Source: Kudoa neothunni (Eukaryota; Animalia; Cnidaria). Taken from it: 57,467 bases of DNA. The stretch lies in contig OZ199838.1 of the NCBI GenBank assembly GCA_964304625.1, positions 15,964,064-16,021,530 on the forward strand, written 5' to 3'. Position numbers and translations under genes: made by a program. The stretch's first letter is position 1. Each line of letters begins with the position of its first letter. The notes under the pieces were generated by a model. It saw only the letters and a list, made by a program, of their open reading frames with translations, searched no databases and was not told where the DNA came from. Below are positions 1 to 55,237 of the stretch, piece after piece.

Positions 1-960
1 AACAGCCGAATAAACCCAAAGCTTTTCCATCTTCTACGACTATGATGTCTAATAGAGCGTCGACAACATTCTCTTTGCTATAATCGAAGTATCGGACCAC
101 AACTTCTAAGACTTGTGTGACTGAAATATCAGTACTCTCGTCAATGATTGGAGAAAACTTTTGAGATCTACATATTTTTGATATGTAGGTATTTTCCTCA
201 AAAGCTAAACCGTCTTATACAATATAGAACAATTTGGTTCTTTTTAATGATAAATTTTCAGCAATTTTAATCATAAGGAGGAAATGATCAACACAACTAA
301 AAGGGATATTTTGTTTTAGCAACTTCATTTTCTATCATTGATAGTTTGCTAGATTTTAAAAAGAGTTATGTCAACATTAGATTTAGAAGTTTCAACGTTT
401 TTGACATGTTTAGTGGTGTTTTTATGCTTGAAAAGCATTTATTTATTTGCATTATTAAGTACAGATTTACAGCATTTACAATAAGTAGAGTTATGATCTT
501 TAATATCTTGAGAAAAGCAGTATTTTAATCTTCCTCTTTTAGCCAATTTTTATTAAAATACATAGCATATCATGTTCTTTTTTTGGTTTTGGCGCGAAGA
601 ATCACTCATAATTTATGTCTAGTATAGATCGATTAACTCACAATTATATACTTCACAGTTCAAGATATTTTTCGAAATGACGTTTAAATTTTCTAATAAT
701 GTGCGACGGTGTACTGAGGAATTATGTAATCTTGCCACGTTAAACAATCTAATGTGTGTAGTTCAATATATTCAATATTTAAACCCAGCATGATATAATC
801 TGAATAGGATACGTTATTAAAAATATAAATATTACTGTCCCATGTTTAAATTTTGGTGTTATTATTCAATGTTTTCAAGTTTTGAATAAAAACTCCATGA
901 ACTCAAGGTGATCATAAAAAACCCAAGATCTTGGGGAAACCCCAAGCGTTGGCAGCCCTG
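1..960 (-). mobile_element. Decayed hAT DNA transposon (one end plus transposase fragment)
   Basis: TIR CAGGGCTGCCAAC at 960; minus-strand FSPIIDESTDISVTQVLEVVVRYFD at ~80-170 matches the hAT first catalytic-Asp motif. Confidence 0.8.
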
Positions 961-1132
961 GCAACCCCGACTCGAGGGCACCTCGAACCAATTTCTCATT
1001 TTAGTGCCCACGACCCCTCACCTACTGTGTATACAACGGATAAATGAAATTTAATATAGAGATGCATTCATTTAGGATAACAAACATTTTAATTATTTAT
1101 TATTACCTATCAAAAAAGTATAAGTTAATTAC

Positions 1133-1414
1133 CTTCTATTGTCAACTTCTTCACGCCATTTAGTTGTAAAGATTCAAATGCAAATTGATGACTTTTCGAT
1201 TGGTCCCGGATGTTCGTCGTTTTTAATTGGCACAATTTTTCCACGCACGTTAAATATTCAAATTGATCATTCAAACTTTTCATCGGTTTTCCATCAGCGT
1301 CATATAGGGACCACTTCAACGAAATTTCAGCAAAATCTTGAACTAGTATAAATTTAATATTTATAACATCATCATCGTCGCCGTATGTATATTCGATTTG
1401 GAATGTGCTTCGGG
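1133..1414 (-). CDS. Array exon R8 (282 nt, phase 1-1)
   Basis: ttttag|CC CGA AGC ACA TTC ... ATA GAA G|gtaatt; RSTFQIEYTYGDDDDVINIKF...KWSLYD...C...C...KLTIEG; open. Confidence 0.85.
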
Positions 1415-4400
1415 CTAAAACATTTATTAAACTGTTAATACAAGTAGAATAATGTTTGATAGATAAATTAAAAAATATTTAAAAGGAAGAATAGTTTTAA
1501 ATTTAAGATTTTAAAAATCATCGAATTATTTATTATATTAATGTGAAATAAATTAGAGGGATAATAAAAACCTTAGTTAGAGTGTGTTTTAAATTTAATC
1601 TTTAAAGTTCGAAATACGTTAACTTATGGGTCGTACGTAATGAATTTTCTTCATTTGAAACAGAGATTATGGCTTGTGCACAAGCAGGTAAAAAAATATT
1701 GGACTCTCTCCAAAAAGTTGAAATAATAGAATATTATCAAAAAGTAGCCAGTAAATCAACCACTAAATTTGAAAAAATGATCATTGATGTAAAAGCAAGA
1801 TCTGTCTTAAATACTATTATAAACATACAGATTGGTTATTTTAACATTATAACGATTGTTCTGTTCCAAATTAATAGAAAATCTCGGAGGGAAAAATGTG
1901 AATATTGATCTACACGTGAAAAAGGTGGACTGAATTGATGAGGGCAAAAGATTGAGGATGACTAATAAGCTTTTATCGTTAAAGTTGTTGAATTCCTTAT
2001 GATTCCTCGCAGTCCATATTTGTATCTACTAATTGGTTTACGGCTTTATAAAAAGATTTAACTTTTCGCATAATACACTTCTTCACATATCTTCAAATTA
2101 CAAATCATTTACCTTAAAAAATATCGCAAATATTCAACTAAATAATATGCTAATTGATCAAAATATGGTCTAAATTTGCAAGTTTTGTTTAATTTCGCAT
2201 GTGTCAAGTTATGTGTCGTGTGTAGGGTTTCAAAAAATCGAGGGTATAGGGATTATCCTCTGGTTCGAACAGATTAATTCAATGTATTCTCAAGATTGTG
2301 TGATTCGTTCACAGTGGATGTTTGTAATCAATGTTAGGAGAAATTTTCTTATCAAAATTCAGCAGTACATTTTTTTGAATAAAATTTTTTATTCCTTTTA
2401 AAGTATCGGCTAAACTAAAGTACTACAATATCTGTGGATAACTTCGGGCGATGTCGCATACAAAATCGGAAATAAATTCTTTTCCTACAATTCGTCCTGT
2501 ATATTCAGTTCTTTTATTTTAGTTCTTATCACAATAATTATATTATGTAGTTAAATTAAAGTTAAAATGAATAAATCTATAAACTGGAAATAAATCTTAA
2601 GTTGAGCACATTCGAATTCACGTGGAATCTCTATATTGTTGATGAATACATCCAAAAATTATTATTTCTACATAATTATAAAAAATCCGAAATCGTTAAT
2701 TTTGTACAGTATTTTATTCATTTGTATATAAAAAAATAAGTTTGTGGATGTTCAGTCTTGACTTTGTATTTTAAAAACTGAACTTTCTGATTTATTCTAT
2801 GAAAAATTAGAACGAAGATGTTTCAACTTAATGATAGCATTTTTATTGTGGTTTTTAGTTTATAAATTTTTTCTGGTAGTTTATTCATAATCAAAAAAAT
2901 TTTACAACAATATTTGTTTCAAAATTCCATCATGACAATTTTAAATTTATATTATTAAGTTTTCCTTTTATTTTCATCTATAAGGCAACTAATAAAATAC
3001 TAAATAATTACTTTTTAATTAAATTTAACTTTAAAGTGGAGTAATAGTCACGAATGCAAATATACGATTTTTAAGCATTTCAAATGAAATCAACTATGAA
3101 TGTGCATTAATCCAAAGCATTTTTTATTAGTTATCTCAACAATATAAGAATGGTGTTAAACCTAAAATTAAACATTTATTACCTAGTTTTTGAATATAAA
3201 GTGAAATATTAGGTCATATTTTATAATCTACCTTAATAATTTTGTGTGGTTGAACGTTTCAAGCGTTTTAAACTAATATAATTAATTTACAGAGTTGTAT
3301 TATCTATTAAAATATATGTAAAAATTAGTAACAACCACAAAACGTTGGAATCAAGAAATCCCTATCCGAATACTTAATAATCATCATTTCAACACATAAT
3401 CACCCTCGTTTTTTAAAAAACTCTCTTCGACCCTCAAAATACACCCTCAGTTTTTTAAAGGCCTAGTCGTATATAATGATTCTAATTTCCCTTTTGATTA
3501 TGTACGACCCATAATTTACTGTATATACATCAAAAGCCGTATATAACTATCAGTTTCTGAATTTCCAAATTTTTGATTCAACAATAAATGAAATTAAATA
3601 TAGGTGGTGTATTTATTGGAGATAAAAAAAAATTATGCTTATTTTTTATTTATTTGTACAAAATATGTATGATAATTACCTTCTATTTTTAACTCCTTCT
3701 TTCCAATGAGAAGTAAAGATTCAAATTTAAATTGATAACTTTTGGACTGATCCTGAATTTGTTTTGTTTTCAATTGACATATTTTGCTTTCGCATGATAA
3801 GTTTACAAGTTTTTCATCTGAACTTTGCACAATCTTATCCTGAAAATCACGTAAATACCATTTCAAAAAAATTTCATTAAAATTTTCTGCTAATATGAAA
3901 TTTATATTTATAATATCTTTGTCGTCATATGTATAGTTGATTTTGAATGTGCTTCGGCCTAAAACATTTTTATACCTTTTAAATAAATGGAATAATATGT
4001 TAAATAGATAAATTAAATTAAAAAACAGTAAAAAAATTAATTTAAATTTTATAGTTGTAAAATTCATATAAATAAAAATTGTTATGAAGAGGAAATTGTT
4101 AGGATAATACAGATCCTAGATGAAGTAAGTAATACATTTCACTCATCAATGATAGCAAAATAAATTTAAACCAAAAACTATAATTTAAAATCAATTTTTA
4201 ACGTTGCCAATTCTTTATTTAACAATAAATGAAATAATATTTAGATGATGCATTCATTAATGATAAATATTTTCTATAATTATTTTTCTATAAAATTGGT
4301 ATAAGAAAATTACCTTCTATCTTCAACTCTTTTACGCCATTTAGTTGTAGAGACTCAAACTTAAATTGATAACTTTTGGACTGGTCGTTGATTTTTGGCG

Positions 4401-7400
4401 TTTTTACATTGCAAAATTTATCCACGCATGGTAAATATACAAATTGGTCATTCAAACTTGTCGCCAGTATTTCTCCAGCGTCATTTAGAGACCATTTCAA
4501 CATAATTCCAGTAAAATGTTGATTTAATTTAAACTTAATATTTATGACATCATTATCACCGTATGTATACTCCATTTCGAATGTGCTTCGTCCTAAAATA
4601 TTTATTATAACATCAATAAAAGGAAGAAAATAAGTTAGAAAGGTAAATAAAATTAGAAAAAGAATATTTTAAATTTTACTGTCAATTAATTTTAATATTT
4701 CTACCGGAATCATTAATGATGAAAACAAATAAAATCCAATATATTACGTAATAATGAACTAGCAACGAAGAAAAAATCAATATCTTTATGTATGATACTT
4801 AAAAGTTTTAATTATCTCTTAAGGGGGATAAAAATTAAAAATGGATAAATTTATAGAACAAACCATTTTTTCGAGAGTTAAAATCACATCACGTGATTTC
4901 GCTGCTCATTAAACCTCCCAGGACGGATGTAAATCCTCGCAGACCTTAATACACACTTTTTTTCGTTTTTCTATACTCAAGATTTATGTAATTAGTTTAG
5001 GTTCTTTGTAATCCTATAGAAAAAACTAGTTTTCAATTTTATTTTTAATATACTTAAAAAATAATAAAACTTGTTTTATATGAAAAACTTTCGGAATTCA
5101 TTTCAACTGTATATTTGTATATATCAGTACAATTAACCCTCTTACCCACGTTGATGGGTCAAAATGACCCAGCCGGACTTAGATTTAATCAGTGTTTACT
5201 TGTTTACACACACAAGGGAACAAATATTTTATCTCTAATTTATTTTTGAAACTTAAATATTATATTATATCATTAAAATGTGTTATTATTAAAGATATTT
5301 TAAGACTCTATACATACACAAAAAATCTCGTTCCTCACTAGTTTTTAATAACTCTGAATAATATTCAAGCAATTGACAGTGTATTTTGAAAAAGGAGCGT
5401 TCGTTTACTAGAAAAACTAGTAATATTAAAATATACTAAAAAATATTAAAGAAAAAACTCTCTTATTCAAACAATTGACCTAGATTGTAACTCAGCGAAA
5501 ATTTACTTGTTTAGAAATAGAAAAATCTCCAAACAACTGTTTTGATTAATACATAATTTATATGTGAGAGGGGATATTTTAAATTCCATATTATAACCAG
5601 AGTATTAAGACTTCCATGATGAGATTGATTTTAGCAATAAGGCCATTTACACGGTTGTAGCGTAAGATCTATCAACATTTAACTCGCATTCGAAGACTAA
5701 CTTATTTAGTGGCCGTTTTTAAAAATTAAACACGTACCTATACATTCGCTCAACTTGAAGTTGCACACATCCGTATTTTCCCTTTCATTAATCTTCTAAA
5801 CCATCAACAATCAATATACTTAATAGAGTCATTTTTTGTAATTGAAACTCATTCTTTATGTATTTAATAATATATTCAACAATAAAATCTAATATTTCAT
5901 TTCCCAGTAAATTTAATAACGAAAAAAGTGGAGTTTCGCATTTTTTAATGCAATATTTTGAAGGGGTTTTTATGTTTGAAAATGTTCCTTGCATCAATTG
6001 TCTTCGAATAAGTGTTGGCTGTTCAGAACATTTTTTCCATCCTCAAATGACATCGAGTAAATTTATTCATTGAAAACATCAATTTCATTATCGGGATAAT
6101 AGTAATCCCACCATTTGAGGCTCTTAATTATACAGTTACGAAATTTGGAATTAATTTATTCAAAAGGGGGATCGTATTCAGTGAATAAAGAATTCATTTT
6201 GTCACATGTACGACTATTATCAGCAATATCCAAATTTTTTATGCAATGATAAAAAATTTGATGAGTTTTCTATAACAATTAATGAGACTATCTTATATCA
6301 AAAAACCATTTATAAAAAATAAATGCTTTCTCGCAAAATTTGGAAAAATAAGAATTTTCTCAAAAACGTTGAGGTTCATTTTGATCTCATCGTGAGGAAC
6401 CTGATTATTTTAGCCTGTTAAAGAGAGTTAATCATATTAAAAGTATAAAAATAAATTAACTACTCTAGATGTAATAAATAATGTAAACTCTCGATTTCGT
6501 ATCTTTTTAGACCAAGGAAAAGTTTCGCAATAACAAGAAATTACGCAACATCGAGACACGCACATGTGTAACTAATACAAATAATAATTTTTTAAATATT
6601 TATTTGGTTTCCCAGTTTTGTTGGTTTTTCGGTGTAAGGAGTGGTTATAAGAATTGTAACCAAAGTTGACATATAGGCTATCATTAGTAGAATGATATTA
6701 CAACACCGCCTTTATTAGCCTTTAAGCTCAGGTTCGAACCCTATACACGAATATTCACTACATAGTACTGTTTTTTTAGATTAAATATGTATATAATATT
6801 CCTCTGATTACGTATTATTTTCGATTTTGATTTTAAAAGGATTACACTCAACAATTTAAGCTAAACAATAGCATGAACATCAATTTTTCCTCCTTCTCAC
6901 AGTTTTTACACCTTATACAAAATTTAACCTTTGAAATTGGGGTTCTAAGTTCATATATTATTAACCTTTTCATATCAAGACAAAATTATCCAAAAATATG
7001 CTAAAATATATCGAGTTACTCAGAGTCGAGAATTTACTGTAAAGATAAAATGGGAAACATTCCGTGATTGCAGCAATTCTATCGATCATGGATGTGCATA
7101 CTTTTATATTCGGATTGCACGGAGATAATATGTTAAGATAGCGGACTGCACCATTCAAAAATAACTTTTTATATTAACATTCGAATACAAATAGAACAAT
7201 GATTTTTTAAGGTTAATTAATTTATTTCAAATCGAATAGGTGAAATCACTTGAGAAATTATTTTTTATGCAATGAAAATCATATACATAATGAATGTTTC
7301 CTAAGATAAAATTTTGCCGAGATTCGTAATAAAGATCTCGTGGGCCACACTGGAACCTCTCGCGGCCCGTAGGTTGCCCATCCCTGCTTTCAACGTTCGC

Positions 7401-10400
7401 CGATCTTTTCATGTTCTATCTTTTGCTTTGAATATAGACCGGACATTTAAAAAATATTTAAATATTAAAAATCTATTCGTTGTAATTTATTAGGGAAAAA
7501 TTATTATCATACATAATGGCGGGAACGACTTACTGTATATTCAGTGTCACCAACCGTGTCCGATTTCGGAAAAAATGGCCAAAATTGTCCGAATTTTTTC
7601 CATGCGTCCTATTTTTACTCTTGTTCTTCGAAAGACTGAATAATCTCAAAACAAATTTTCGATGATACGGAGTTTTTTAAAATTCACAAAAAATGGAATT
7701 TAATCGTTGCTGATTTCATTACAAGAAATCTTCGAGTAGATAATTTTATACTTGGAACAATGCTTTATTTCAAATTAAAATAACTGTAATATAAGTTCAT
7801 TAAACATAAGATACAATTAGGAATTTTAATAATTATTAAATCCCACGTAATACAAAAATTTATCAATATAAACACGTTTTTAAATTTTATACTTCTGTTA
7901 AGACCAACATTTTGGATTTTTTATCATTATATGCGACAAGGAACAGTTTTATCGTGACCATGAACCATTTTGGAATTATTACGAAGAGATATTTATGTTT
8001 GAATTAAAAAAAAGACTCTGATGTTGGTGATATCCATTGCTAAGTAGTTATCATTATAAGTGTTTGTTATCAATTGTCAAAAAATCCTAATTTCAGGTAT
8101 TATCTAAAAAAATTAAAATTTAACTAAATATTATCTACTTGACTAATTTCTCTTAATTTTAATGAATGAATGGTCGCATATAAAAATAAAACCTCATCTA
8201 GGTATAGTATAGTTGTTGCGTGAAATTCAAAAGTCGAACGATAGACTGTAATAGAATTGTTTAAAATTAACGGAATTGAATAGGCATAAACAAAGTTTGT
8301 TGACTAAATTATTAACAACCACCTTTTAGGTCATTGTTGCACGACAAATAAATTTTAATTCTATCGGAAAATACCACACATCTTTATTTTTATTAACTCT
8401 GATTAACGCTTTTTCGGAAAGAGCATTTTCCCTTCTGAAATTATCGAAAAAATCAGAATAAATAGAATGTTGTGCCTTACATTAGATGATCTTGTTCTAA
8501 TGAGGAATTTTTTCAACATATTGACAAAATGATGTCATAAATTTGAAGTTTCTTAATTAATTAAAAATTAACGTAATTTTTATACGTATAATTAAATATT
8601 AATTCCGTTTCTACAAAAAATTATGATTTTTCCCATTTTATGCGGCCAAAATTTTGCCAGATGTCGGATTTGGGTTGGCAGCGCTGCGTGTAAATCTTCT
8701 AATTCTAACGGCCGTCGGAAATAATTATCACTCGTTCAACATCGTAAACATAAATATCGATTTTTCTCAATATTTAATGACAGTAACGTTTTGAGATTAC
8801 AATACTTTATTTTTTATAATTATACAAATGTTTTTAAAAAATAAAAACGTGGCGTTTTTCTGGGCCCTAAACTGCATGAGGTAAGTATTTGATATAAAAT
8901 CCTAAAAAACAAAAAATTAATAATTTAAAAATGAATTATGAATATATAGCAACTTTTAGAAGAATAAATGTTGGTTTTTACCGATTTAACGTCTTCAATG
9001 TACGGTGAATTGAGAATTGAGATGAAATCCGGCCCGTGGTGCATTTGGAACCCAAAAATACTTGGAGGGTTCATTAATTAATTTATTAATTAATTAAATA
9101 TGCATGTATATACATTGTATATTTAATAACGTAAAAATATTTATAAATTATAAGCATCTTGAAGTAATACAAATAATAAATATATTAATGAGGAAGAAAT
9201 GGGCAGCATAATGCAAATCCTAGTTGGAGAAAATTTTACATTTTGCCCATCAGAGTTAGCAGTATAAATTTATAACAACAATCATAGTGAAGAATCAATA
9301 TTTAAATACTCCAATGCTTGATTTAATGATAAATAAAATTAAATATAGATGATGTATTCATTTATGATAATATAGTTATTTTCATAATCAATAACAATAG
9401 CACTAGTAAATTACCTTCTATAGTCAATTCTCTCACACCCTTTAATCGAGATGATTCGAATGTAAATTTGTAACTTTTGGATTCGTCCTGCTTTCGCAGC
9501 GTTCTTAATTTGCATACTTTCATAGTACACGGCACCTCTTCGAATTTTTCATCTGAACTTTTCACGTTGGTTTCTTGAGTGTTATATAAAGACCATTTCA
9601 ACGTAATTTTATTAAAATCTTTATTTAATGTAAAAGTAATAATTATAACCTCATCATTATCGTATGCATATTCGATTTCGAATGTGCTTCGTCCTAAAAT
9701 ATTTATTATACCATCAATAAAAGAAAGATAATACGTTAGATAGAAAAATAAATTTAAAAAATATTTAAACAAAAATAATTATAATTTGATTATTTGAAGA
9801 GATATAAATAAAAATTATGTTAATAAGGAAGAAATCGGTAGGATAATACAAATCCTAGCTGGAGTAAATTGTACATTTCGTTCATCAATGTAAGCAATAT
9901 TAATTTATAACAAAAAATATAAATAAGAAATAATATTGAATTATGAAAAATCTTGATTTAACAATAAATGAATTAAATATAGATGATCCATTCATTTATG
10001 ATAGAAATTTATCCAAGTTATTTTTTCTATCAAATTAGTATAAAATATGTACCTTCTATTATCAACTCTTTTACGCCATTTAGTTGTAATGATTCAAATG
10101 TAAATCGAAATCCGCTGGATTGTTCCTCGATTTTAGACATTTTTAATTGACATAAATTATTATTGCACGGTAATTTTATGAATTTTTCGTCGGAACTTGT
10201 TACCGGTTTCCTTTCAGTATCATATAAGGACCATTTTAGCGAAATTTCAGCAAACTCTTGAACTAATGTAAATATAATATTTATAACATCATCGTCGTCG
10301 TATGCATATTTGATTTCGAATGCACTTCGTCCTAAAATATTTATTATACCGTTAATACATGTAGAATAAAATAATTTATAGAAATATTTAATTAAAAATT

Positions 10401-13400
10401 ATTTAAAAGAAGAAAAAGTTTACGTTTAGGATTTATAAACTCATAAAAATATAAAATATACTCATGTGGAAGTAATTAGTGGGATAACACAAATTTTAAA
10501 CGAAGTAATTTAAATTTCTCTTATCAAAGTTAGCAGTATGAATTTATAACAGCAACCATATTTAAGAATCTGTTTTTAATTATGCAAATTCATGATTTAA
10601 TAACAAATAAAATTAAATATAAATAATACATTCGTTGACGGTAAGAAATGATTATAATTATTTTTACATATTTATAAAAATAATTACCTTCTATCTTCAA
10701 CTCTTTTACACCATTTAGTTGTAGAGATTCAAGTATAAATCGAAATCCTCTAGATTGTTCCTGGATTTTCGACATTTTTAATTGGCATACATAATTTCTA
10801 CACGATAACTGTTCAAAATTGCCTTTCGAACTTGTCACCAGTTCTCCTCCAGCTTCATTTAGAGACCATTTCAACGAAATTGCAGTAAAACCTTGATCTA
10901 ATGTAAAAATAATATTTATGACATTATCAGCGTCGTATGTATATTCGATTTTGAATGTGCTTCGGGCTAAAACGTTTATTATACTATCGATACAATCAGA
11001 TAATAAGTTGGATAGATAAATAAAAATACAACATTTTTAAACATAAGTAATTATAATTTGATCATTTGAAGTCATAAAAGTAAATATTGTGTTAATGAGG
11101 AATAAATTGGTAGAATAATACAAATCCCAACTATTGTATGATTTAGATTTATCTCATCTTTGGCAATAACATGAATAATCAGTGTCAGAACAAATTATTA
11201 ATTATATAATATAGAGTTTTACGAGCTTTAACAACATTGCGTCTAAATTTGGATTGTTAATAAGTATATAAGTCATATTCATACCATGGAAAATATTAAG
11301 TGAATAGAAAAAAACATAAAACAGTTTATTTATATAAAAGTTACAAAATAAAAAATATATTAGTCGACGATTCTTACATAAAAGTCAAAAAAACGAGGCA
11401 ACACTCTCCAACGAAAAAATTCCATGGAATATTTTTTAGATAAATGGAGGAGCAAAATGATACAAGGACAAGCAAGAGTTGAGCATGATCTTTAAATTTA
11501 ATTGATGATTGATACAAAGTGAGTACTCCAGATAATTGTCCTGTATACAATCGGAAGAAGTTTCAATGTGTTTCCAGATGCCTCAACAGGAGAATTAATA
11601 TGGAGTAAATATAAGTTTATGTCATCATCTTCCACTATTATTTTATACGTGAATCAAAAAAATTGAGTTTTTAATTAACCTTGAGTTACATCTGGTGCTG
11701 TGTTAAAGTAGGATTGTTTCTGTTAGGCAGAATCATGTTTATCGCCAGATGTATAAAAATTTAATGTTTAAACTCTACTTATTTTGAAAGATTTTATTAT
11801 TTGTTTATCAGTTAATGTAGCAAGTCCTCAAACCGCGTTGTTAATTGTTAAAGCTCGCAAAACTCTACATTCAAATACTTCATTTAACAATAAATGAAAT
11901 CTAATATAGATGGAGAATTCATATACGATAATAAATGATTGTAGATATGTATAGTATCTATCAGCATAATGTAAGATAATTACCTTGTATCTTCAACTTC
12001 TTATCGCCCTTTAGTTGTAATGATTCAAATGTAAATATATAGTCTTTGGGTTGGTCAAGCTTTCCCAAAGTTGTCATTTGGCATAATTTATCTATGCAGG
12101 TCAATTTTTCGAGTTGGTCAACTAAACTTTCCACCGGATTTTCTTCAGAATCATGTAGAGACCATTTTAATGAAATTTTATCAATCTGTTGGTCTAATCT
12201 GAATTTGATAATTACGTCATTATTGTTATCGTATGTATATTCGATTGCGAATGTGCTTCGGGCTAAAACATTTATTATACAATCGATACAAATAGACTAA
12301 TATGATTGATAGATAAATAAAATAATATTTTTAAAAAATTATAATTTTAGTTTTGTTGTCAATATATTTTAATACTCCGTTAGGAGTCACTAATGAGGAA
12401 ACAGATAAAATCTATTATATTAAATAAAAATCTACTTGTAATGTTGAAATTTCAATATCTTTATTAACTTTACTTAAAAGTATTAATAGACATACAGGGA
12501 ATTAAAACTAATGATGGATAAATTTTACATAATGAATCAGTTTTTTAAGAATTAAAATCGTGACACGTGATTTTTCGCTCATTAATAATTTTTTGATAAA
12601 ATTTAAAATTAATAATTTCACTTTAATTAAAAAATATAAAAAATAATCACACATAAAACAGATATAAAAATAATGAAATCGCTATATAGAAATTTTTTAA
12701 AGCTCTGTAGACTCTCCATTTTTTTATGACGTTAAATGATAAAAATATATAATATTATATATAAAATATGTACGTACATTATATATTCAAATGGGTTATT
12801 GTTTATAAATATATTAAAGTATAAATATTTATATATTTTAATCTCTTTGAAAAGTCACAGATATTCAAAAAATATTAATGAGGAGTAATTTGGCTGAACC
12901 AAAAATTCTAATTTGAATGTGTTTTACACTTAACACATCAAAGATAGAACTGTATATTTAACATTAAATATCAATTATGCAATATTAAAATTCTAAATAA
13001 AATATAGATATTGTATTTATAGATGATAATAAATTATTAACTAATCTATGAAAATATTATAATTTAATTACCTTCTATCGTCAACTCCTTTACGCCAGTT
13101 AATTGAGAAGATTCGAATAGAAATTGATAACTTTTCGAATGATCCAGCGTTCCCAATGTCCTCATTTCGCATACTTTATTTTTACATGATACTTTTTCGA
13201 ACTCCATATTTGAATTTTTCACCATATTTTGATGAGTATCACGTAAATACCATTTCAATAAAATTTCATCGTAATTTTGTTCTAATGTGAAATGAATAAT
13301 TACAACATTATTATCGTCGTATGTATATTTAATTTGGAATGTGCTCGGATCTAAAACTCTTATTATACTCTTAATACAAGTAGAAAAATACCTTTGGCAA

Positions 13401-16400
13401 CGAATACTGGTTTCATATCATGGAATATATATATATTGGACCTTATTTTAAATCTTTGATCAACATATCTGTCTATTCCATTAAACATGGTTTTGCAAAC
13501 ATTACCATCACAATTAAGATCAACATAAAAAGTATTCTTTTTTTTTTCTATAAATTGGTCTGATTTTTTTTCTAACGACGTGAGATCAATTTTCGCTCTA
13601 AAACTTTCAATAGATTGCACAACGTTCAAAGTAATCGAAATTTTAGTATCAACCCGTTCCGCGGAAAATTCGTAATTTCTTATTACTATAAATATGTCAA
13701 GAAGTAAGTAATACTATTAACATTAAGTTCAACTAATCTTACATTTTGTTATGATAATTTTGTTAGTTTTCATTACAAGATCTCCTGATATAATATCGAT
13801 ATCGTAACGACTACCACGTTTAACCCCATGTATTTCAAACGTAAACAAATCATTTTTCTTTGATATTCGTAGAGTTTCTGCTGAATTATTCAATATTTGT
13901 GGTTCTTCACTTATCTTAAGACTCCAATCAATCGCAATAATTTCATATGTCAGAATTAGCCGCAACACAACAATAATTTTAAACTTTTGATTCAGCTTCA
14001 TCAATTAAAGTGTGATCGAGAGCATAATCACTTTTAACTAATAATAGATTAGATTATTTTTGGCGAAAGCATTCTATAATACCTTTTTGAATGACTACAG
14101 TAAAATCATCATCGCATGGCGGTATTTTTATAACGATATTATGGTTTTTGGTGGGAGATATAGTGTGAGGTTTGAAATTGCATACATATTGTGTGCAGGT
14201 TACCTGCTCATGGTTTACGTTAAAAACTTCCTTATTATCAAAATCGGATTCAACGACTCTATAACTAATTCCTAATGTTTCAACAATTGACTTTTGAATA
14301 ATTTCTACTAAAATTTCGTTATTTAATTCACGTCGCTTTGTAACTTCAAAGTCACACGCCTCTAAAATATATATTAATTAGATTAAAGATTCATACATTG
14401 TTGTTTATATTAACAAATAGTTAATTGAACCTTTCATTATATTATATGGATCATAATCTTCGAGCAGATGAGAGGACAACTCTATCGAAAGATTGACATC
14501 AGTATTCAGATCTTCAATCTCGAAGGTGCATTCATTGTTTTTACACACAGCACCTATTTCTTTGCAATGTGACTCATGTATAATTTCTTTAGTAACAAAA
14601 ATTGTGTATTTAATATTCAGAGTAGAAATTTCGATTTGGGAAGATATTTTCAGCTGAATATTTAGCTTTTTGTTGATCCAACTATATTTGAACTCGTAAC
14701 TATACCTTCCTATAAATAAAAAATATATTTATTAAATTATTTAAATTTTTTTATAATATTCTAAATGATATAAAAATACCTTCACTTGTTTTTAGAATCA
14801 TGGTTTCTTCAGATCCTGGGAATGTGAATTTTTTTTCGCTTCCAATTGCACTCTCTTGAAGTGTACAGTAAAACTTTTGACCTGTAAATTCGATTGGAAT
14901 CGTGGAAGCAGAAATATCCGATGCCCCATTGTTTAAGGTTATATGAGAACCGGGTAGAACCGTGTAGCCATCCAAGTATAGTTTTATATTATCGCCAAAA
15001 AATTTAGAATATTGATAATAAAAAATTTTATTAAAATCTAAAGAAAAATTAAAACTGTAATCTATATAACTCGTTCACTCGTTCGGTAATATATTTCCAA
15101 TTTGTTTAGTTCTTGTGAAGATATTCTTATTAAGGCTGTATCCAATGATTTTTGCATGTTGGTTATTTCATAATCAAATGAACACATATAATTATGACAT
15201 TCAATAACCTCGTCGACATTATTTTCGAATATCATTTCATCATTTAAAAAATTATACGCTTCAATTTTTGTTAAATGGATAGTTTCAAGTGAGTGGGAGA
15301 GTATGATGTAAAATTTGATATTCCTGCCAGTAACCTTTACCCTTCCGTAAGCGTTATAGAATCCTATATAGAATTTAATTAATAGTTACAAATACAAATA
15401 AAATATAAGGAAAATATACGTGTAATTTTTATGTTAGAAGATATTTCATTTCCGATAGAATATTTTTTTATTGAGGTTTCTTGAACTAAACAACTTTTAG
15501 TTAAAATTACGCTTAAAAGGTTTTTATCTATAGAATTCTCTATAATATAACATTCTTTATCAATAATATTTCCGTTAAGTAGCATATTTGATTTGAGAAA
15601 TTCCTTATTTTTTTCAGTGGCAGATAATTTTAACACAGCTCTGTATTGATCATTTGAGTCTCTTTCTTCAAACAGGATCATTTGATTCTCATTAACTAAA
15701 GAGAATCAATAATGATTTCAATATTCAGATTCACAAAAATTTCTTAAAAGATATATATATTTTATAACGAATTATTGTTAATTGAAGTAAAGCACATATG
15801 CATGATAAGTACGCACTTTAACCCCGGGTGCAGTATGCGAATTTCTGCCTTATCCGAAATTATATTTACATATGGTTCGTCCCTTTATTAACATTGCCTA
15901 TATTCGAATAATTCGAATATACGGTGAAACATCGGAACTCGCACAAATCGGAGTTCGGCCAAAGAATTTGAGCCATTAACAAATCTGAGGTCGAACTCAT
16001 AGAGCAGTATTTCCCTACAAATTTTACGCCCATATCCCATCGTAATTTCCTCGTTCACTTCGCACCCCCTCCTCCATGTGAATGCCAAGACTCGTTTATA
16101 CTTTTTATTTAAATGTAAAAATTAAAATCTCTTAAAATTATAATCTATATTATTTTAGTTTATATTTCAACTTAAACATTTTCTCAGTTACATCTATAAT
16201 AAATTAATACCAAAATGTTTTGGTTAACTTAATTTGCTATGTTTAATTGAAAAATGATGAACACTATCTTTTCACTCCTCAAAGTCTAACATTTAATGAA
16301 TGGAGCTATTGTTCATTCCTGCTTATATATATCCTTTTTATGTAAAGTAAAAAAATTCTATTAAATCACGTTATTATAATTATTCCAAAATATTAGACTT

Positions 16401-19400
16401 AAAAAATGTATATAAACGAAATTCTAAATTATAAAAAGTATGGTCGCTTAAATAAGTTCTATACTCAAAGGTGAAAATTAAATGAGCCAAATAAAAATCG
16501 TCAATTCGTATATTTCACAAGAAACATTCTTTCAAAATCAATTTTAATTTAGTATTTATTTGATCAGACAATTCTCTTGCTCTCCTTGAGTTTTCATAAG
16601 TAATTCAAAGCTGGACATTTTGTTCGATTATGGAACATGAAAATCATTTTTGGGGTTTAATGAATTCTGATATTTATTATTTGTATAAAATGAAGTTGAT
16701 AAGCTTGTATCATATACTATCCTGTGCTGAATAAATCTAGCGACCTCATTATTCTATATTGAGTCATATGTTAACTTAAATTCCATAGATTCAAAAAATA
16801 TGTTTTCTGAATATACTTTAAAAAATCTAATATATATTGTTAAAATTGGCATTTATTTACATGTATAAATGAAGGCACTGATCCTTGTTATACCAATACG
16901 TTAAAGAACAATTTAACTTATATTAATATAAGAGGAAAAATAAAAATTTGAAAGCAAAACTTAAAATGTAACATTATAAAGCATGTACAATTAAATGATG
17001 GATCTCAAATTTTGACAAAATTTAAACCACATCGTGGTTTTATTTTCATGGACAGAGAATATTTATAAGCAGATAAAAATGCTGAGAACTTAATTACAAC
17101 TAAAGCATATATATATGTTATTTTGAAAGATAACGAATCTATAATTTTACATAAAAATAGCGATAGTTAGATTTTGTAGGTTAAACAGGCTTAGTATAAA
17201 CTACAACCATACTGCGCTATTTCGTAGAAGGAATTAAAATAAATTATCATATCCCAATTTTGAATCAAAACAACCAGAGTTATTGTATACATTACGTTCT
17301 TACATGATTTAAACGGGGACTAATGAAAATTACGCTTTGAAAAATTAAGATTTTTGATTTTTGAGTCAACGATAGTTGTTATAATAAACATTAAGAACTA
17401 ATTTTTTTCGTAAAATCAATGACCAACTATTTTAAACGAAAACGTAAAATTCAAATGAAAAAAATATATTTTCATTAAAGAAAATTAGAGGTGTGAGCCT
17501 TTTCAGAATTTTGAGGAATTCGATTTCTTGCCAATAGACAGTCCTACATTGTTTGATATGCTAGCATGATAATACCGACTACATAAATTATTTTTGGATA
17601 GTCCAAAGCGGAGAATGAGTTATTCATAGGAATATGCATTTTTAAGGTAAACAATATTTGTTCAATTTAATAATTAATATCATAAAATAGTATAATCAAT
17701 TTTGATTATCATGAAAAAAAATTCTTACTTGTGAATTTCTTTCTTAATGGGGTCATTTCGTTCGAGTGTATTAGTAATGTGGCTGGATATTCACAAACAT
17801 CGTCGAGTATTATCGTATCAACACATTTTCTGTTTTTACACAAAATGTGTTTATTTTGGCTTTTGTAACACTGGTTTTGAAACTTGTCATATAATGATTC
17901 GTTTAAATTTATATGTTGAAGTGGTTGGCTGATACTATACACAATTCGGTGGTGGTTAATTTTTTTCGTTTTAAAGAAATCAACATCAATTATCATTGGA
18001 ACTATAATTGGAAATACGTAAGAAAATTACACTATAATTGTATTAGTTACCTTTATTGATTTTTATACGGCGATTAAGAAAAACGAACGAAAATTGATAT
18101 CCGGTTGTATTGACTTCGGTAATTTTTTTGGGAGTTGCATTACAAGAATTATTCTCACAAGTTATTTCAAGGTCAAACACAGCATTATTAATTTTACGGA
18201 CGTCATTCTCATAATAAATGGCATCCACGGGACAACTAATCCTGTGTTTACTAGTTAAGAACATACTTATAGTTCCATGAAAATAAATTGTGTCGTTTAT
18301 TATGATTGCGTTGAATAATTTTGGAACAATATTTCCGAGAACTAAAAAAATATCAGAAATTAATAAACATTGAAATCTATCGTACGTTTCATTTCAATCT
18401 GATAATGCCTGGTTGGAATCATCAAAAGAATCGTATTATTTGAATCGATTGAATAAATGACTGTTATTGAAGGGCAATTTTGTTCTTTTATATCACCATA
18501 TAATATAAAAGGAGTATTTTTTCTCTTGATGTTTTTTGCCTTTGGTGAGGTCTCAGACGATTGAATCTTAGAATTGACCAATGTGTATGTACACTGACCA
18601 GATGCACTCAGACTGATGCTTTTCTGTTGATAGAAATATGCCAATTCATAATCTTTATTGTTCGAAAATATACCTAAAAATAGAATTAATTACTTTCAAA
18701 CCTAGTTAAGGGGGGATATGCATCTCCTATTTTTCACCCTTTACACATGTTCGACAATCCCGATTTTATTAAATCAATTATTCACCACTTAAACTTTTGG
18801 TCGAATAACAATTAGCCCCATAATTCACTTAAAAATTTTTGCTAAAATTCATGTTCGACTACAAACGGTGAATGTGCATGTTAATATTCATGGTAGTTTT
18901 GTTCTATTTTCCACATGAATTTAACATATTAGCCATGATTAAGCATGGTTTTGCGTTGTTCTAAATTTCTAATATGTTTTTACCACCATTATTTAAATAA
19001 AATGTTATTCTTTCTGTCGACTTTAATAGAAAATATTTTCGTGTTAACTGCGTCACGTTGATTCTGCCTATTTCATAGAAACGCACTAAGAAGAAACTTT
19101 GAATTGATATCTTTTTAATTTTGGATTTTACCAAAAATTAATTAATTAATTAATGTATATGTATAATTTATTTTATGAACTCCGAATAATTAATGTATTC
19201 ATTATTTGTATCAAAACATAAATAACACATTTTTATATTTTCAGGGTAGTTTTCATTTTAGTTAATACAACATTTAACGAAACCTCATTATGGTGTTTAT
19301 CTGTGGCCAGCACCAATTTTACAGCATTTTACGTTGCAACGAGAAACTAATAAATTTGTTAATTGTCAAAAAACTTATCCGAATTCCAACAAGATGCAGA

Positions 19401-21935
19401 AATTACGGAAGACAACATTTTTTTAAAGTGAAAGTTATTAAAAGAAAAGTAAGTAAAACAGTCTGCGACAATTAAATTGCAGAAGCTTTTGTGAATTAGG
19501 CGTGGTAAAAATAAAATAAAAACTGACTTTTATTGATTCATCGATTTAGAATATTCATAATTTTGATTGAAACTAAAAAATAATAAAGCACTCTATTGAC
19601 GCGTAAAAATTAATTGTATAATGGTAAAGTATGTGACTCCAAAAAACACCATCTAAAGTCAATTTTTTTTTTAATTTTTTCTTTTAAGATTATCAATAAT
19701 AAATCAAAAGAATATTGAGCTCAAATAAATTACTTCTAAATTTTCTCCTAATTCAGATTCGAATACAGTTGGATACACTAGTAATCCATATCGTTTTGCA
19801 ATAAACACAAAAAGGTAGATGATTATTTGCTTATTGTATCCTAATTAGTATACTACATCCATTATTTAAATTTTCTTAATATTTACGTATCAAATTTAGC
19901 TTAGTAAACCTTCTTAATAATCTTGTCTAATATTAAGGAGTAATGTGTCATCTATCTTTATTATTAAATGTCAAATTAACTTTTAAACTATTTGAAAACT
20001 TCATTAAATACTTATTTTAGTTTACAAATTTTTAATAGTACATTATTATTAATGAAGTAATCTCTATACATCGATTATAGTAATCGTACATTGATATTTT
20101 TGGTTATAAAATTGAAGAAAGTCATATATTAATAATATTTCAATACATATTTTATTTATCTGAAGATATTAAATAAAGAATTATTATAATAATAATAATA
20201 ATCTAAAATATTGTCTACATTTTTTAAATACGACATAAAATATGAAATTTATATACATTTCAAATTTTATTTATTAGGACAAAAATATTTGTTTTAATTA
20301 AATAGTTCATTATTTTTATAATATATAATTAAGCTTTGAAATGAAATAATTATAATTTTAATATAGAATCTTCTAAACGAATATATATTTTATCTTTGTT
20401 TTCTTGTTGTTTGAACTAACGGAAGCCATATTAGCGAAAAAAGTACGGTTTCAAGGGGAAACACTAGTTTTACATCTTAACTACCTCAAGTTGTTGTTCC
20501 GCAGATGATAAGAAATTTTTATAGCTGTAGGTGAAGGCATAATCAATGTGATTTCTCTCAAGGCATGAAGTTTCTGTCATTGGTCTCCTTACATTTAATT
20601 TTTTCTTTTTTAAAGTAAAGATTTCGAAATTCCAACAATTAAAATTCCACCTTTTTGCAGCAGCATTAAGATAACCCTTTGTTATCAATATGTAAAATAA
20701 CCGATCATGATCATAAATTAAATAGAAAAAGTCATCGTTCCCTCTAAACTTAAAAACTATATTATCGCGATTTTCACGTGGTAAATAAACAAAAAAATTT
20801 AATATAGCTTTTATTAAAAATAATATAAAATAACAATTTTCGATAATTTCCAAAATAAATAAATAATCAGCTGTTTTTCAGTGTTTATTGCAAACTATGT
20901 GGGTTACAGTTGTACCTGGTAGTAGTTGAATAGGAATTAGGAAAAAATTAGAAAAAACTGACCTTAGATGGTGTTTTTGGAACCACATATTTAACCATTA
21001 CCATTTTTCGTATATTTATTGCTTCAGTGTAATTATTTCATCTGTTTCTTACCATATTATAGATTGCAACATTTTTTTATTGGAAATTATAGATACTAAT
21101 ATCTATATTAATTTATTATTGCGGTCAAATTTACGTTACGGCTGTACACTTGAAGAAAACCTGATTTTCTTAAAGTTATCTTGTAGGTGTAAAAATTTTA
21201 CTTCACGTTTTCTCCATCAGAGCTGATTCCTGTATTAATGTGAGTCTGATAGGTGACTCACAAAGTTATAGACTCTCTTACACCCTTTTATCTATTTCGA
21301 TAATGGTCGCCAAAATAACAAATATAACAAATGAACTAAATATAACAGTATCTCAACTTCTCACTAAACATTTGGAAGAGAACTCGTCTGACATAAATAA
21401 TTAATTTAATCTATTTCTGTATAGTTACTTAATGAGTTTTTTTCGTACGACTTTAAGGACTCTTCTAATTGATTAAACGAGTTAAATATTCCCTCGACTT
21501 AAAAGATATTATTCTCAGCACTGCCTTCTATTATTTTTTATTCGCGCATATTATAATTTCATGAAAAAATTCACATAAATGCGTCGAAATAATTAATCAT
21601 CTATAATCATTAATATTAATTATAAATATAATTCATATTTATAAGTATAACAAGTTTTGTAAATTTATTTTCATAACACTATTACATCCTTTTCAGAGTT
21701 ATCCGTTTTAAAGTACCATAAAAAGTCAGTTAAATATCATTAAACCAAAGTCTTATATACTAAATTTCTTTTTAACGAACAAGCAAATGTATTTGTGTAT
21801 ATATCCATAATGTGTACTTATAATAGATTTGATTTATTTGGGTCGATTTGAGGATGAATCAACGAATTAGAAATCTAACCAGTTGGGAAATAGTCACTAG
21901 TTTCAGTATAACATCAAAAATTATTTTAATGATCG

Positions 21936-21972
<37 letters not shown>

Positions 21973-24900
21973 TATTTTATATTTTTAAATCACTAACTTT
22001 TGTTAAACCCAGCCTAAAGACTGATCTTTATCGTAAAATTAATATATTAAATTTTACATGAAAATATAATATTTAATAGACAAAAATATGTTTAAGTGTT
22101 AACGGAAATTATAGGTCAACGCATACTGAGAATCAGGAGAAATTCGTTTTCGTGGCAATAGATAGCCTCGACATGAGATTATACGTTGGCATGGTAATAG
22201 CCAATGCCTTAAGACCAAAGTACAGTCACATTAAACCGATCGAAATCTCAACACTACATCAAGTGTAATCTTACCGCATATCAACCACATTACAAAGTCA
22301 TATGAAAAACATGCAGGACTGGAAGTCGCATTGATGATGAGAAATAATTTTCATTGATTTACAATAGTGTAACAATGCTATTAAAAAGAATTTAATGATT
22401 TTTTTATTTTAAAGTGTTGGAATTATATAAAACGCGCACAAGTAATTCTATATTTAGTTTTAAAACATGTTGTATGGATCTCATGGAATTATTTTCTGAA
22501 TAATACGTGACCTTTGTGGCATTCTCAACAAAAAAGTTCCCGACCCTGGACTATACCCTTTGTATTAACCCTCACACTTACTTACGCGTGGTGATTTTAG
22601 CCTCGTATGGTCCGACATTGCAAATAACAAATGTAATGGAATTTACTCAGATAATTTGAAGGCATGGTCTGTTGGAATTTTCCATTAAACTCAGCCTTGT
22701 TATCTATGGTGACAGTCATCTCTCCGTCTATTATTTCGGTTTGTATTTTTATGTCGCCACAGTCTAAATCGAATTCATTTTGCAACGGTTCGCATCTAAA
22801 AGGATCCCATAATTCGGTTTTTTCACGGCCATTAATAGCAGTGCAGACGCAAGTGATTTCATGATCGAAATTTGATGTGATTTCAAATTCACGTTTATTT
22901 TTTTCAAAATAAATCGATCGGAATAGTTTTAATTGATGTTCTAAAAATCGATTATTAATATCAACAATAAATCAAACCGTAGAATATAACAAATACTAGA
23001 TTGGTATATTTTGCATGAAAATTTTGTTCCATTCTCTACCATGCAAAGTCGTATTATCTCATTTGGATGGACAATGTAAGTGGCAGTGCAGACTTTTGTT
23101 GTTATGGTAGGATCATCGCCATTATTGCAATCTAGTTTTTGGTTCAGCTCAACTTTTTCTCGAAAGCTTCCATTATTAAACTTTAAATATTTAATATATT
23201 TGGATTGGCATTGATTTGAGATTTCGCAGGTGATTTTTATTTCAGTTTTGAACTTGTCGGTTTCTGCTGTTGTGACCGTTATACCATCCTAATTAATGTG
23301 ATTGTTTATGATTTGGTGTGAGCGTCGAAAATAATTTAATCATCTTTTTTAATCAATAATAAAAATAATATATATTCACGTACAATTGACTTTACATAGA
23401 GTGAAATTTAATAACTACATACGTAGCAATATTTTTGGTCAGAATTTAGTTTAATATTTAATGTTACAAAATTAGTATTTATTAAATAGAGTTATTAAAA
23501 ACTTACAAACTCTTTTTCGGGGTAATAATGAATTATAAACTGAGCCTTTCCTTCCTGTGATATGACCAATTGATATTCGGCACTCAACTCAGGTTTAAGG
23601 GCAATATATTGGACATTATCCACAGTGATTTCTTTTAGATTCGATGAATTCACTTCTGTAATCATGCCATCTTCCTGTTTTAAGTACCATTTATAGTTTG
23701 TAGTGTTTTTATTCCGTTTCTTATATATGTTTGAAAAATAAACATAATCACCCGAAGATTTAAGTAAAAAATCTTTTTCAGTTGAGTCTAACAATAACTG
23801 CATTACTAAAACATATTCCAACGTAAATACCTAAAGTAATCATTCTGTTTTGGTTCTCATTTTCTAGTCTCAAAAGAATATAGTTTAATTTATTTTCCGT
23901 TATATCATCATGGTTAGATTCAGCAATAATTTCGTCACAATTTTTTTTCTCTCCACTTGGATTTTTATTTTCAGCAATGAGTTTGTCAATTTTATCTTGA
24001 GAATCATATCCGAGTTGATAATAACATTTAAATCCAAATATGGGGGAATTTCGAAGATAAAATTTTATTTTTTCATTTTCCCATTCATAATCATAATTGA
24101 AGGAAAATGGAACTATAAAAAGTATAAACTTATCGACTACAAAACTGCGTAACTACCTGACTTCACACGGTATGATTCTTCATTTTGATCAATTGATATA
24201 GTGAAGTCGTATTCCGTGGAAACATCATTGGGAATATTTATATCATTACAAAACATGACATCCCTACAAAAATAAATCTCAGTCATAAATATGTATTTAC
24301 TATTATTTACTCAGTTGATGGTGTAGTATTAACACGAATATCGCACATAACATCATATGTATCTTGATATTTGTTTTGAATAAAGATCTTTTTGTTTTGA
24401 TAACGAATCCCAGTAACAACATCACGATTCACTATAATAATTATTAACTTAGTTATGAATTTATATCAATATAGCATAAATTGGTCTATTAAAATACATA
24501 AATATTTTATAATTCAACGTTGTTGAGGTATATTTTACATACATATATTGCAATGCGTAAAAATATTTTATTTTTGTTAGTGTTTTACAAATTAAAATTA
24601 TTTCATAATTAAATTGAACGATTTAAAAGCCATTGAGGATTCACGGGCCTGTAATAATTGCAAAGGACTTCACAAATTTTTGGAGATACAATCCTATAGC
24701 ATTAATACGTTCAACTTATCAGTAAATATTTTAATTGATACTCTTACTCCTTGGTCTGAAAAAATAAATTAATAGAAACAAACGAAAATTGTACATAAAG
24801 GATTATTGATTCGATAAAAAATGAGTTTATATTTAAGGGCGATAATTTTATCAAAGACCATAAATTCATCATTGGCTTTGTTCCATTTGAATCTTGAAAC

Positions 24901-52900: not shown

Positions 52901-55237
52901 TAGGTATTTGTTGTGTATAATGATCTTTTTGTCATGATAAAAAATCCCAGTAACAACATCACGATTCACTATAATAATTATTAACTTAGTTATGAATTTA
53001 TATCAATATAGCATAAATTGGTCTATTAAAATACATAAATGTTTTTAATTCAGTGTTGTTGAGGAAAATTTAAACCGCCAAATCGATACCCTCATTGGAA
53101 AAGCTTCAAAGCTATTTCAACAATAAAATCCAAATATTCTATTCAATATTAGAGTTCAAAAATATTAGAATTTAAATTTATTGTAAGTTAATAAAAATAA
53201 TGTAAGCCAGTGCATTAATTATTGCAATAAAATTGTATAAACGTTTTATTTTACACATGTTCAAAACCTGGATATTGCGTTCACTCTTTTTTATGTGCAT
53301 TCACTTGAACTTCCCAGGTTGGTGAGCAATATCCAGAGACAACTGTATATTCGAAAATATAGAAAATGAATTCCAGAAAGTTTTACAGGGATTATTCTTG
53401 CGTACAATCTATATCATTATTATTATCTTTATTTATAATTACATAATGTAACTACTCCAAGGAAAAAATTATAAACACTAAAACTTAATCAGTTGTACTT
53501 TGTTTTAAAAGCTGTATTTTTGAATATTTTGAGATACAGAATAGTTTTGAACATGAGGTGAGAAGATGACACCAAAATTAGAGCTCATACACAAAAAAAT
53601 TAATCATTGTAAGCATACTGATTATATTACTCCATTATTAACATAAAAGATATAAAATCAATTTTTAATGCATTTTACTCTTATTTGATAATGGCTAATA
53701 TAAAATTTTTAGAAAATTTTAATTTGTTTAATCTTTAATAATAAGAAATAATAATTTTCAAGAAGTACATTACTTTCAGACTTCAAAAAAATTAGGAATG
53801 TAATAATTAAATACGTTTTTATTATTTAAAAGTACAATAAATATTTAAACAATTTTTTGATGCTAAGTACTTATTCACTGTCTAGTAAAGTAATCATTTA
53901 TGTCATTAAAACCTATTCTCAATAATAGCAACCATCAGAAGGAAATTTGGTTTCGATAAAAATAAGATAATACATGACTACAGAATGTCCTTCTACCAGA
54001 TCATCTTTCAAATCTACAAATTGCTTCATACATAGAAATTATTTGAGCCATTACATTTCGATATTTTCTGGTCAACTATTTATCATCCATATCATTAATT
54101 TTTGCAAAGAACAATGAAAATGTTCGAAATTTTATATCTAACAAAATTTTGGAAATAATTTTTAATTGAAAATATAATATTCATCACGTATTTATCTTTT
54201 ATTAATGTTATTTATTGAAATAATTAGTCAATTATTAATAAATAATTTATTCTTTTTCTAATTTCTTAATACTTTTGCAATAATTTAAAAATTATAGTCA
54301 TATGGATTCTATTTGTTATACCTATTAACTATAAAGTATCTTGAATATATTAACAAATACAGTCGAACCCGTTTATCCGAAAATCGCGCTATTCGAACAA
54401 ATTTTTAAATTTTATTTGAAAATGATGTAGATTTTCAATATAAAAAAATTGGTTTAACAGAAACAACTTTTTTCTTGAGTGTTTGGACAAAAGTGCCTTG
54501 AAATCTTGACTACTTTGATTACTTTGATTACCTTGATTACCTTGATTATTTTGATTACCTTGATTACTTTGATTACTGCCTGGTTAAAATGACATCTTTA
54601 TTTATTTTTATGTTACATATGTTCGTTATTTATTCAATTCGAGTTTATGTTTGATTAATAGAAACTATGTAGCATAGATAATACAGTATTTTACGTTAAA
54701 AATGCAACCATGTTGATAATGAACAGATAAAAGTTGTGTAAATACAAATTCCTTCGTATCTTCTCATGAGAAATAAAATATAAAAATGAAATTTATTAGA
54801 TTGTTCAATCACAAACTAGCAGTGAATTCATAAAATAAGATGAATTCATCAATGTTCGCACATCGGTTTTCCCCACAACACCTCCACTTTTATGTCCTTT
54901 TAAGTCTTAACCATCATTAACCAACATTAAATTGTTGGATAAATGCGTATCTTAATTAAAGAAGAAATTCTAAATATGGTTATTGAGAATTCTGAGAAAA
55001 TATTCCTCATTGTTATTGTAATTATTCTTACCGATATTATTAGTACAACTCATAATATCAAAATCAAAATAGGGCGAAATTATAAAACAATTATTAATAA
55101 TGATAGTAGTTCATTTTTTAGGATTTAGAATGTATCTCTAGTAGGGTACGGTGGTGATAAAGTCGTACATATCTGCATCTGTAGCACGCATGCGCCAACA
55201 AATATTGAAATAGGAATAATATTTTACAATTGTAATT

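Follow-up and report, generated by a model that had tools for sequence, protein, structure and literature searches.

Introduction

In arthropod Dscam1, the clusters of exons 4, 6 and 9 are tandem arrays of homologous exons that agree in length and conserve their splice sites, each coding for part or the whole of an Ig-type domain, and such clusters generate isoform diversity. The arrays of fibronectin, tenascin, titin and the cytokine receptors place one beta-sandwich module in each symmetric phase-1 exon; tandem fibronectin type III (FN3) and Ig arrays grow by unequal crossing-over and set their modules in series almost without linker, and in tenascin-C FN3 repeats are optional spliced cassettes. 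Among G-protein-coupled receptors (GPCRs) of the adhesion class, ADGRV1 carries many Calx-beta repeats. In ADGRE5/CD97, three to five EGF repeats are chosen by splicing (PMC13197933). Both receptors have a long modular ectodomain, with the repeats N-terminal of the GAIN domain, followed by the GPS and a secretin-like seven-transmembrane (7TM) domain. Here we describe a related arrangement in Kudoa neothunni, a myxozoan parasite of fish muscle. The stretch analysed, called the window throughout, comprises 57,467 nucleotides of contig OZ199838.1 (assembly GCA_964304625.1, positions 15,964,064 to 16,021,530 of the forward strand), and it holds most of an array of homologous exons in an adhesion GPCR gene that we call gene A. 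A first-pass annotation of the window had offered this array as a candidate Dscam-like variable-cassette system. We find instead that it is a well-preserved case of modules multiplied in tandem through exon duplication, in a surface receptor of modular build that belongs to a parasite-specific adhesion-GPCR family, and that its exons are probably all included in series, as an expansion of the stalk of a giant receptor.

The published K. neothunni assembly comprises three chromosomes and a circular mitochondrial genome, with one (TAAACC)n telomeric end, about 5,300 predicted genes and a median intron of 49 nt; myxozoans are very reduced cnidarian parasites (PMC12239612). The genome paper also reports haplotypic duplication, low coverage, and few RNA reads that map (PMC12239612). 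Our literature search found no paper on adhesion GPCRs in myxozoans.

Results

Ten intact exons form a tandem array in gene A

The units of the array and one repeat inserted between them are as follows, where L004 denotes the sequence flanking the window on the left.

13072–13350, minus strand: unit R8, first of the gene A array, 279 nt, phase 1-1
11984–12262, minus strand: unit R7, 279 nt
10688–10966, minus strand: unit R6, 279 nt
10053–10331, minus strand: unit R5, 279 nt
9415–9693, minus strand: unit R4, 279 nt
7606–8638, no strand: interspersed repeat in the R4-to-R3 intron, at least 40 genome copies at 76–85% identity
4314–4592, minus strand: unit R3, 279 nt
3680–3958, minus strand: unit R2, 279 nt
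1133–1414, minus strand: unit R1, 282 nt, one additional codon
L004:6011–6289, minus strand: unit R0, left of the window, intact
L004:5378–5656, minus strand: unit Rm1, left of the window, intact

Eight homologous, open, phase 1-1 exons, seven of 279 nt and one of 282 nt, had been described in the first-pass annotation, and we recovered all of them in place, on the minus strand. A search of the window with the motif given there returned minus-strand sites only, namely these eight and a ninth at 40324 (see gene B below), and the conserved core quoted with it agrees with our alignment of the units. Extending the search to the left, as had been proposed, added R0 and Rm1, which lie 3.7 and 4.3 kb beyond the window's edge in the fetched flank; both are intact, and the gene A array amounts to ten units. 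A search with the exon profile (nhmmer) matched exactly these ten units and 40044–40322, and no decayed copy.

The units share a uniform anatomy. All nine within the window are open over 92 or 93 codons when read from the third base of the exon, with no stop in the coding frame against 7–12 in each of the other frames, and each unit holds exactly two cysteines. Every unit is bounded by a ttttag acceptor and an AAG/gta donor, the introns are GT-AG throughout and the intron phase is 1-1. Since each donor ends in G and each unit is phase 1-1, the residue at the junction is set by the acceptor alone and any pair of units joins in frame. From R8 to Rm1 the inter-unit introns measure 809, 1017, 356, 359, 4822, 355, 2265, 4843 and 354 nt; those free of insertions are 354–359 nt long, and where insertions are absent the start-to-start spacing is 634, 638 and 635 bp (eight copies in a direct-repeat search), in line with the basic unit of about 635 bp estimated earlier. 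The suggestion that transposable elements occupy the larger gaps was likewise borne out, by the repeat listed above and by positions 1–1100 of the window, which have more than 40 genome copies. At the left window edge there is also a hAT-like open frame (2–214, minus strand), its family judged by eye from the translation.

The sequence of the window is gap-free, and contigs from a DNA run cover 9681–10962 and 10936–12995 unbroken, which confirms contiguity across R5 to R8. As a separate observation, one contig from DNA run X1 links 11328 to 12823 and omits 1494 nt that include unit R7; with only 20 letters on its shorter side, the link could reflect a repeat artefact instead of an allele with nine units.

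The array lies directly before the GAIN and GPS region of an adhesion GPCR

Beyond the last unit, gene A continues with a 790-nt intron, a helical mini-exon of 74 nt (phase 1 to 0) and then the GAIN, GPS and 7TM exons, located in the left flank as follows.

L004:4514–4587: gene A mini-exon, 74 nt
L004:3782–4267: gene A GAIN exon
L004:3520–3774: gene A GPS exon, with the GPS motif H-T-T (C-x-C-x-H-T-T; its gene B counterpart is at window 35845–36195)
L004:3201–3479 and L004:2599–3066: gene A 7TM exons

Domain searches were run exon by exon, without a joined protein. The Pfam GPS profile (PF01825) scored 28.1 bits in gene A and 24.5 bits in its sister gene B against a cut-off of 22.5, and a transmembrane exon follows it. 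Two exons matched 7tm_2 at profile positions 30–117 (17.2 bits) and 160–242 (13.6 bits), each below the 20.6-bit cut-off when taken alone. These results support the placement of the array exons in an adhesion-GPCR ectodomain, directly before the GAIN/GPS region, where the window alone had already suggested that they belong. Both genes read C-T-C-N-H-T-T-S-Y-A-I-I-F at the GPS, with Thr for Leu at −1, and so depart from the canonical autoproteolysis triad H-L-(T/S). Judged by this motif, the receptors of genes A and B may not self-cleave; uncleaved adhesion GPCRs are common. Gene A resembles ADGRV1 and ADGRE5/CD97 in its long modular ectodomain, with the repeats N-terminal of GAIN and GPS and a probable secretin-like 7TM part after them, and it differs from them in a module that is lineage-specific, in a GPS that reads H-T-T rather than H-L-T, and in a tenfold difference in repeat number between neighbouring genes that are 97% identical.

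The array is part of a series of homologous module exons

Upstream of R8, gene A consists of further module exons.

13392–15695, minus strand: seven one-module exons upstream of the array, phase 1, 258–296 nt, introns of about 41–70 nt, boundaries provisional
17712–32432, minus strand: 5' part of gene A with more module exons, in blocks 32432–29961, 24310–22600 and 18689–17712

Most of the modelled introns in this part are in phase 1 and 41–70 nt long, the one directly upstream of the array being 41 nt, and two of the exons are exactly 279 nt; a few junctions are ambiguous, and four of these come out in phase 0 or 2 in the top-scoring model. A hidden Markov model (HMM) of the units matched upstream exons weakly and in register, at 32432–32076, the first open segment of the gene (E 9e-5), 14377–14057 (2.5e-3) and 13713–13366 (4e-3), these E values referring to a database of a few hundred open frames, and a C-x4-C hairpin is common to all modules. 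From the exon phases, the in-register matches and the common hairpin we infer that homologous modules, one to each symmetric exon, make up the whole ectodomain as a chain, which would give gene A roughly 30 small FN3-like modules. Because nearly all modelled ectodomain junctions share the same phase, frame symmetry is not specific to the array. The earlier proposal that any subset of the exons could be spliced in frame is therefore true of the array and does not set it apart from the rest of the gene.

An AlphaFold2 model of the unit, built from an alignment of 11 units, was all-beta with a predicted local distance difference test score (pLDDT) of 88.7. In an exhaustive structural search the top matches were mostly FN3 domains, at Z 7–8.1 and a root-mean-square deviation of 2.5–3.0 over 83–87 of the 92 residues, among them domains of gp130, LIF-R, tenascin, fibronectin, NCAM and CD45; Foldseek returned generic Ig-like sandwiches only. 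The model is suggestive of an FN3-like beta-sandwich and stops short of proving one, as Z scores of 7–8.1 are common for beta-sandwiches. A single-sequence AlphaFold2 model of an upstream module reached a pLDDT of 55, too weak to say more than that the strand order is similar. At the level of sequence, a Pfam search with every unit, taken up to E 10, turned up noise and no fn3 match, and no PDB sequence match appeared up to E 1. Among 1.84 billion representative proteins, an exhaustive search with the unit profile yielded one real match, an 82-amino-acid fragment from a short contig in the European Nucleotide Archive (ENA); two bacterial repeat proteins also returned by this search were rejected as spurious. 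With that fragment as its sole real match, the search yielded no transcript-derived multi-unit protein. By sequence, then, the module family is an orphan. It shares with the FN3 and Ig arrays the one-module symmetric phase-1 exon, the serial modules almost without linker and, going by the model, a possible FN3-like fold, and differs from them in lacking any sequence relation to Pfam fn3 or to solved structures and in its conserved C-x4-C hairpin.

The units arose by duplication of a 635-bp segment and are under purifying selection

Alignment of the flanks revealed that the 41-nt intron of R8 and a decayed end of the exon preceding it are kept upstream of every unit. Because these flanks are retained, the repeat unit is best described as a 635-bp genomic segment copied by unequal crossing-over, as in the growth of FN3 and Ig arrays. 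As in other tandem-domain arrays made by exon duplication, each symmetric exon holds one module and the repeat includes homologous intron. The units differ from one another at 12–35% of nucleotides, with identities of 71% in the exons and 64–66% in the intron flanks. The ratio of nonsynonymous to synonymous divergence (dN/dS) among them, a calculation that the first-pass annotation had put forward as a check, is 0.40 (bootstrap 0.27–0.49), demonstrating that the units are under purifying selection, and they vary mainly outside the hydrophobic core. The units most similar to R8 are R0 and Rm1; divergence is greater in the inner ones. The exon and intron trees of the units conflict and yield no single order of duplication; this discordance points to exchange between units.

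These observations are consistent with a history in which the last module type of gene A, R, would have been amplified to ten by repeated unequal crossing-over of a segment made up of the exon with about 300 nt of the intron that follows it, the original upstream intron of 41 nt and a decayed piece of the preceding exon. The copies would then have diverged, the fold being under purifying selection and mosaic exchange going on between copies, while transposons enlarged some of the introns. If the ten exons are spliced in series, nine additional rigid modules (about 30–40 nm) would stand between the distal modules and the GAIN/GPS-7TM part, and might give an adhesion or mechanosensing receptor a longer stalk or lever.

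Paralogous receptor genes repeat larger blocks of the same modules

About 15 paralogous 7TM exons are present in the genome, with R-type units near most of them. Gene A is like these giant modular adhesion GPCRs in its module family, its one-exon-one-module structure, its mini-exon/GAIN/GPS/7TM end and its occurrence in tandem gene copies. In the paralogue at C2:11.68 Mb three copies of a block [a,b,c,d,R] stand in series ahead of the GAIN domain, and in the one at C2:3.23 Mb two; module types a, b, c and d of the paralogues were matched by the unit HMM at 1e-5 to 2e-8 over profile positions 1–84. In gene A, the exon at 13392–13685 is of the d type. The period of the five-module blocks is 2.8–3.9 kb, whereas gene A alone amplifies the single module R, with a period of 635 bp. 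Because the paralogues repeat whole five-module blocks in series, lengthening the chain appears to be the usual habit of the family. Even in a reduced parasite genome, about 15 giant adhesion GPCRs with an orphan module as their building block are retained and rapidly remodelled. In view of these paralogues with module arrays, and of the EGF repeats of ADGRE5/CD97, of which three to five are spliced in (PMC13197933), the earlier statement that no such array was known in an adhesion GPCR proved too strong.

The one contig of a related species (L009) has a d-type module, not another R, ahead of the R unit beside the mini-exon, so that one family member of that species ends in [c, d, R, mini-exon]. 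The mini-exon has about 79% DNA identity to its counterpart there (about 1002–1075), and the neighbouring module 46% protein identity. We considered this gene as the orthologue of gene A and rejected it as such: its unit is about equally close (45–48%) to the R units of several paralogues.

A sister gene carries a single unit

To the right of gene A in the window lies its sister, gene B.

39869–57466, minus strand: gene B copy of a segmental duplication, matching gene A at 12901–31686 with 92–99% identity
40044–40322, minus strand: B1, the single unit of gene B and the 11th copy overall
36839–36912, minus strand: gene B mini-exon, 74 nt, helical and in phase 1 to 0, at the start of the GAIN region; both gene A and L009 conserve it
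34923–36592, minus strand: gene B GAIN, GPS and 7TM exons

The shared exons of the two genes are about 97% identical, and the genes hold ten R units and one, respectively. B1 is 99% identical to R8, with one amino-acid difference. On the 3' side of B1, 171 nt match the flank of R8; then come 2.7 kb of unique sequence, which include an inverted-repeat element, and after them 275 nt, immediately before the gene B mini-exon, which are the intron end common to gene A. Two histories fit these data: a deletion of nine units from gene B, or a later homogenisation of the 5' parts of the two genes. The synonymous divergence (dS) of the shared exons is 0.03 with a dN/dS of 0.63, indicating weak constraint, compared with a dS of about 0.75 among the units themselves. 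The depth of run X1 over the part shared by A and B is about twice that over the array, as expected for two copies. With near-identical neighbours that differ tenfold in modules, the A/B pair is a natural experiment on stalk length in an adhesion GPCR.

Gene A differs from gene B by an additional T at 13981–13983 (TTT, against TT at about 40953 in gene B), within the exon at about 13743–14040. A DNA-run contig over this site lacks the additional T, and this contig may represent both copies or only B. Since the base falls within a run of T, in an assembly of low coverage, and is absent from that contig, it may be an assembly error; either that or a very recent inactivation would account for it. 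The other shared exons that we compared are open in both genes. Separately, some of the shared exons differ between A and B by many amino acids, 12 in the exon at 14431–14709. In the flank on the right of the window (L007), at about 57741–63907 in window numbering and upstream of gene B, the first exon blocks occur for a third time, as a partial copy that contains counterparts of 32432–29961 and 24310–23498; it may be a 5' duplication internal to B or else a third gene that is truncated.

Serial or alternative use of the units

Tandem units equal in length, phase and splice sites invite comparison with Dscam1, in which case one of the ten units would be chosen for each mRNA, giving ten isoforms that differ next to the GAIN domain. 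The single unit of gene B, the lack of an R-R tandem in the related species' contig and the concentration of variation outside the hydrophobic core would all suit such mutually exclusive choice, which we nevertheless judge very unlikely. No known exclusion device fits: exon lengths are divisible by three, no intron between units is shorter than 354 nt and every one is GT-AG, so that neither frame shift with nonsense-mediated decay, nor steric hindrance, nor U2/U12 incompatibility applies. The intron upstream of the array, at 41 nt, is too short to house a docking site. As the one candidate docking intron tried, the last intron, of 790 nt, was compared in 30-nt windows with all inter-unit intron flanks (RNAduplex), and its docking/selector complementarity did not exceed that of shuffled sequences, the best median free energies of −14.6 and −14.3 being reached by 13 and 12 of 19 shuffles. 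Intron conservation is even, with no conserved island; Rfam found no RNA in 1–16000; and no inverted repeats flank the units, the only two pairs found being weak, AT-rich and inside a transposon-laden intron. Moreover, one-of-ten choice cannot explain the five-module block repeats in the paralogues, and the fact that R0 and Rm1 are closer to R8 than the inner units are suits chain ends better than interchangeable parts. The units of gene A also differ from those of Dscam1 in being whole, chainable modules. With frame symmetry at nearly all modelled junctions of the ectodomain, serial blocks in the paralogues and neither a docking signal nor an intron island, the Dscam analogy that headed the first-pass annotation is unsupported by the sequence. 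A looser form of alternative splicing, in which units are optional and receptors carry varying numbers or combinations of R modules, seems to us somewhat better placed, if still doubtful. Any subset joins in frame by virtue of the 1-1 phase and the donor G, gene B indicates that a one-unit receptor is viable, the introns are long for this genome (PMC12239612), and ADGRE5 with its three to five EGF repeats is a precedent among adhesion GPCRs (PMC13197933). Against this, the units have splice sites no further from consensus than those of the upstream exons, the introns hold no conserved element, and a frame symmetry that extends to nearly all modelled junctions predicts nothing specific about the array. 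Taking these possibilities together, it is rather improbable that the ten R exons are used alternatively, singly or in subsets, so as to change the membrane-proximal module, with gene B as a fixed one-unit version. If they were, the array would rank as the first system of Dscam- or tenascin-like diversity known from a parasite receptor, and would give a myxozoan splicing-based surface variation, possibly for host or tissue recognition or immune evasion.

The constitutive long stalk, which the first-pass annotation had rightly listed as an alternative, is the reading that we favour, with several points weighing against it. Three RNA runs labelled as the same species yielded 0, 0 and 1 (partial) reads on 9350–15340, none of them usable. 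With its single R unit, and with no R-R tandem in L009, gene B indicates that the receptor works with one unit there, and choosing one of ten would yield the same product. The array introns, at least 354 nt and about seven times the genome median of 49 nt, leave room for regulation. Finally, the additional T at 13981–13983 frameshifts and stops a c-type exon of gene A in the assembly, gene B being intact. This last point also bears on the idea that gene A is silent or a young pseudogene and the array an intact-looking relic, for which the dN/dS of 0.63 between A and B and the lack of usable reads from the RNA runs could be cited as well. We regard it as unlikely: all ten frames are open at a dS of about 0.75 and a dN/dS of 0.40, which implies that the units have been functional for most of their history, the T may be an error for the reasons given above, and all other gene A exons compared are open. 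An artefact of assembly, whether a mis-assembled repeat or two haplotypes joined in tandem, is hardly credible. Haplotypic duplication and low coverage are on record for this genome (PMC12239612), and the depth of run X1 over the array is about half that over the A/B shared part; yet a 12–35% nucleotide difference between units is far too much for collapse or mis-joining, independent short-read contigs run unbroken across 9681–10962 and 10936–12995, the window has no gaps, and a twofold depth of the shared part is what a true two-copy duplication predicts.

Other features of the region

In the introns of gene B there are Tc1/mariner-like open frames at 44164–44872 (plus strand), the family again judged by eye from the translation, and, between B1 and the mini-exon, an element with inverted ends of about 180 nt (37771–37948 and 39150–39328). 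The 5' introns of gene B contain a Q/N-rich low-complexity open frame and a long trinucleotide run (poly-Leu / poly-Ile in translation) at 54392–54583 and 55121–55308. Elsewhere in the genome, (TAAACC)n was found at one contig end only (C2:12039536–12040071) and nowhere else, which fits the published telomere motif.

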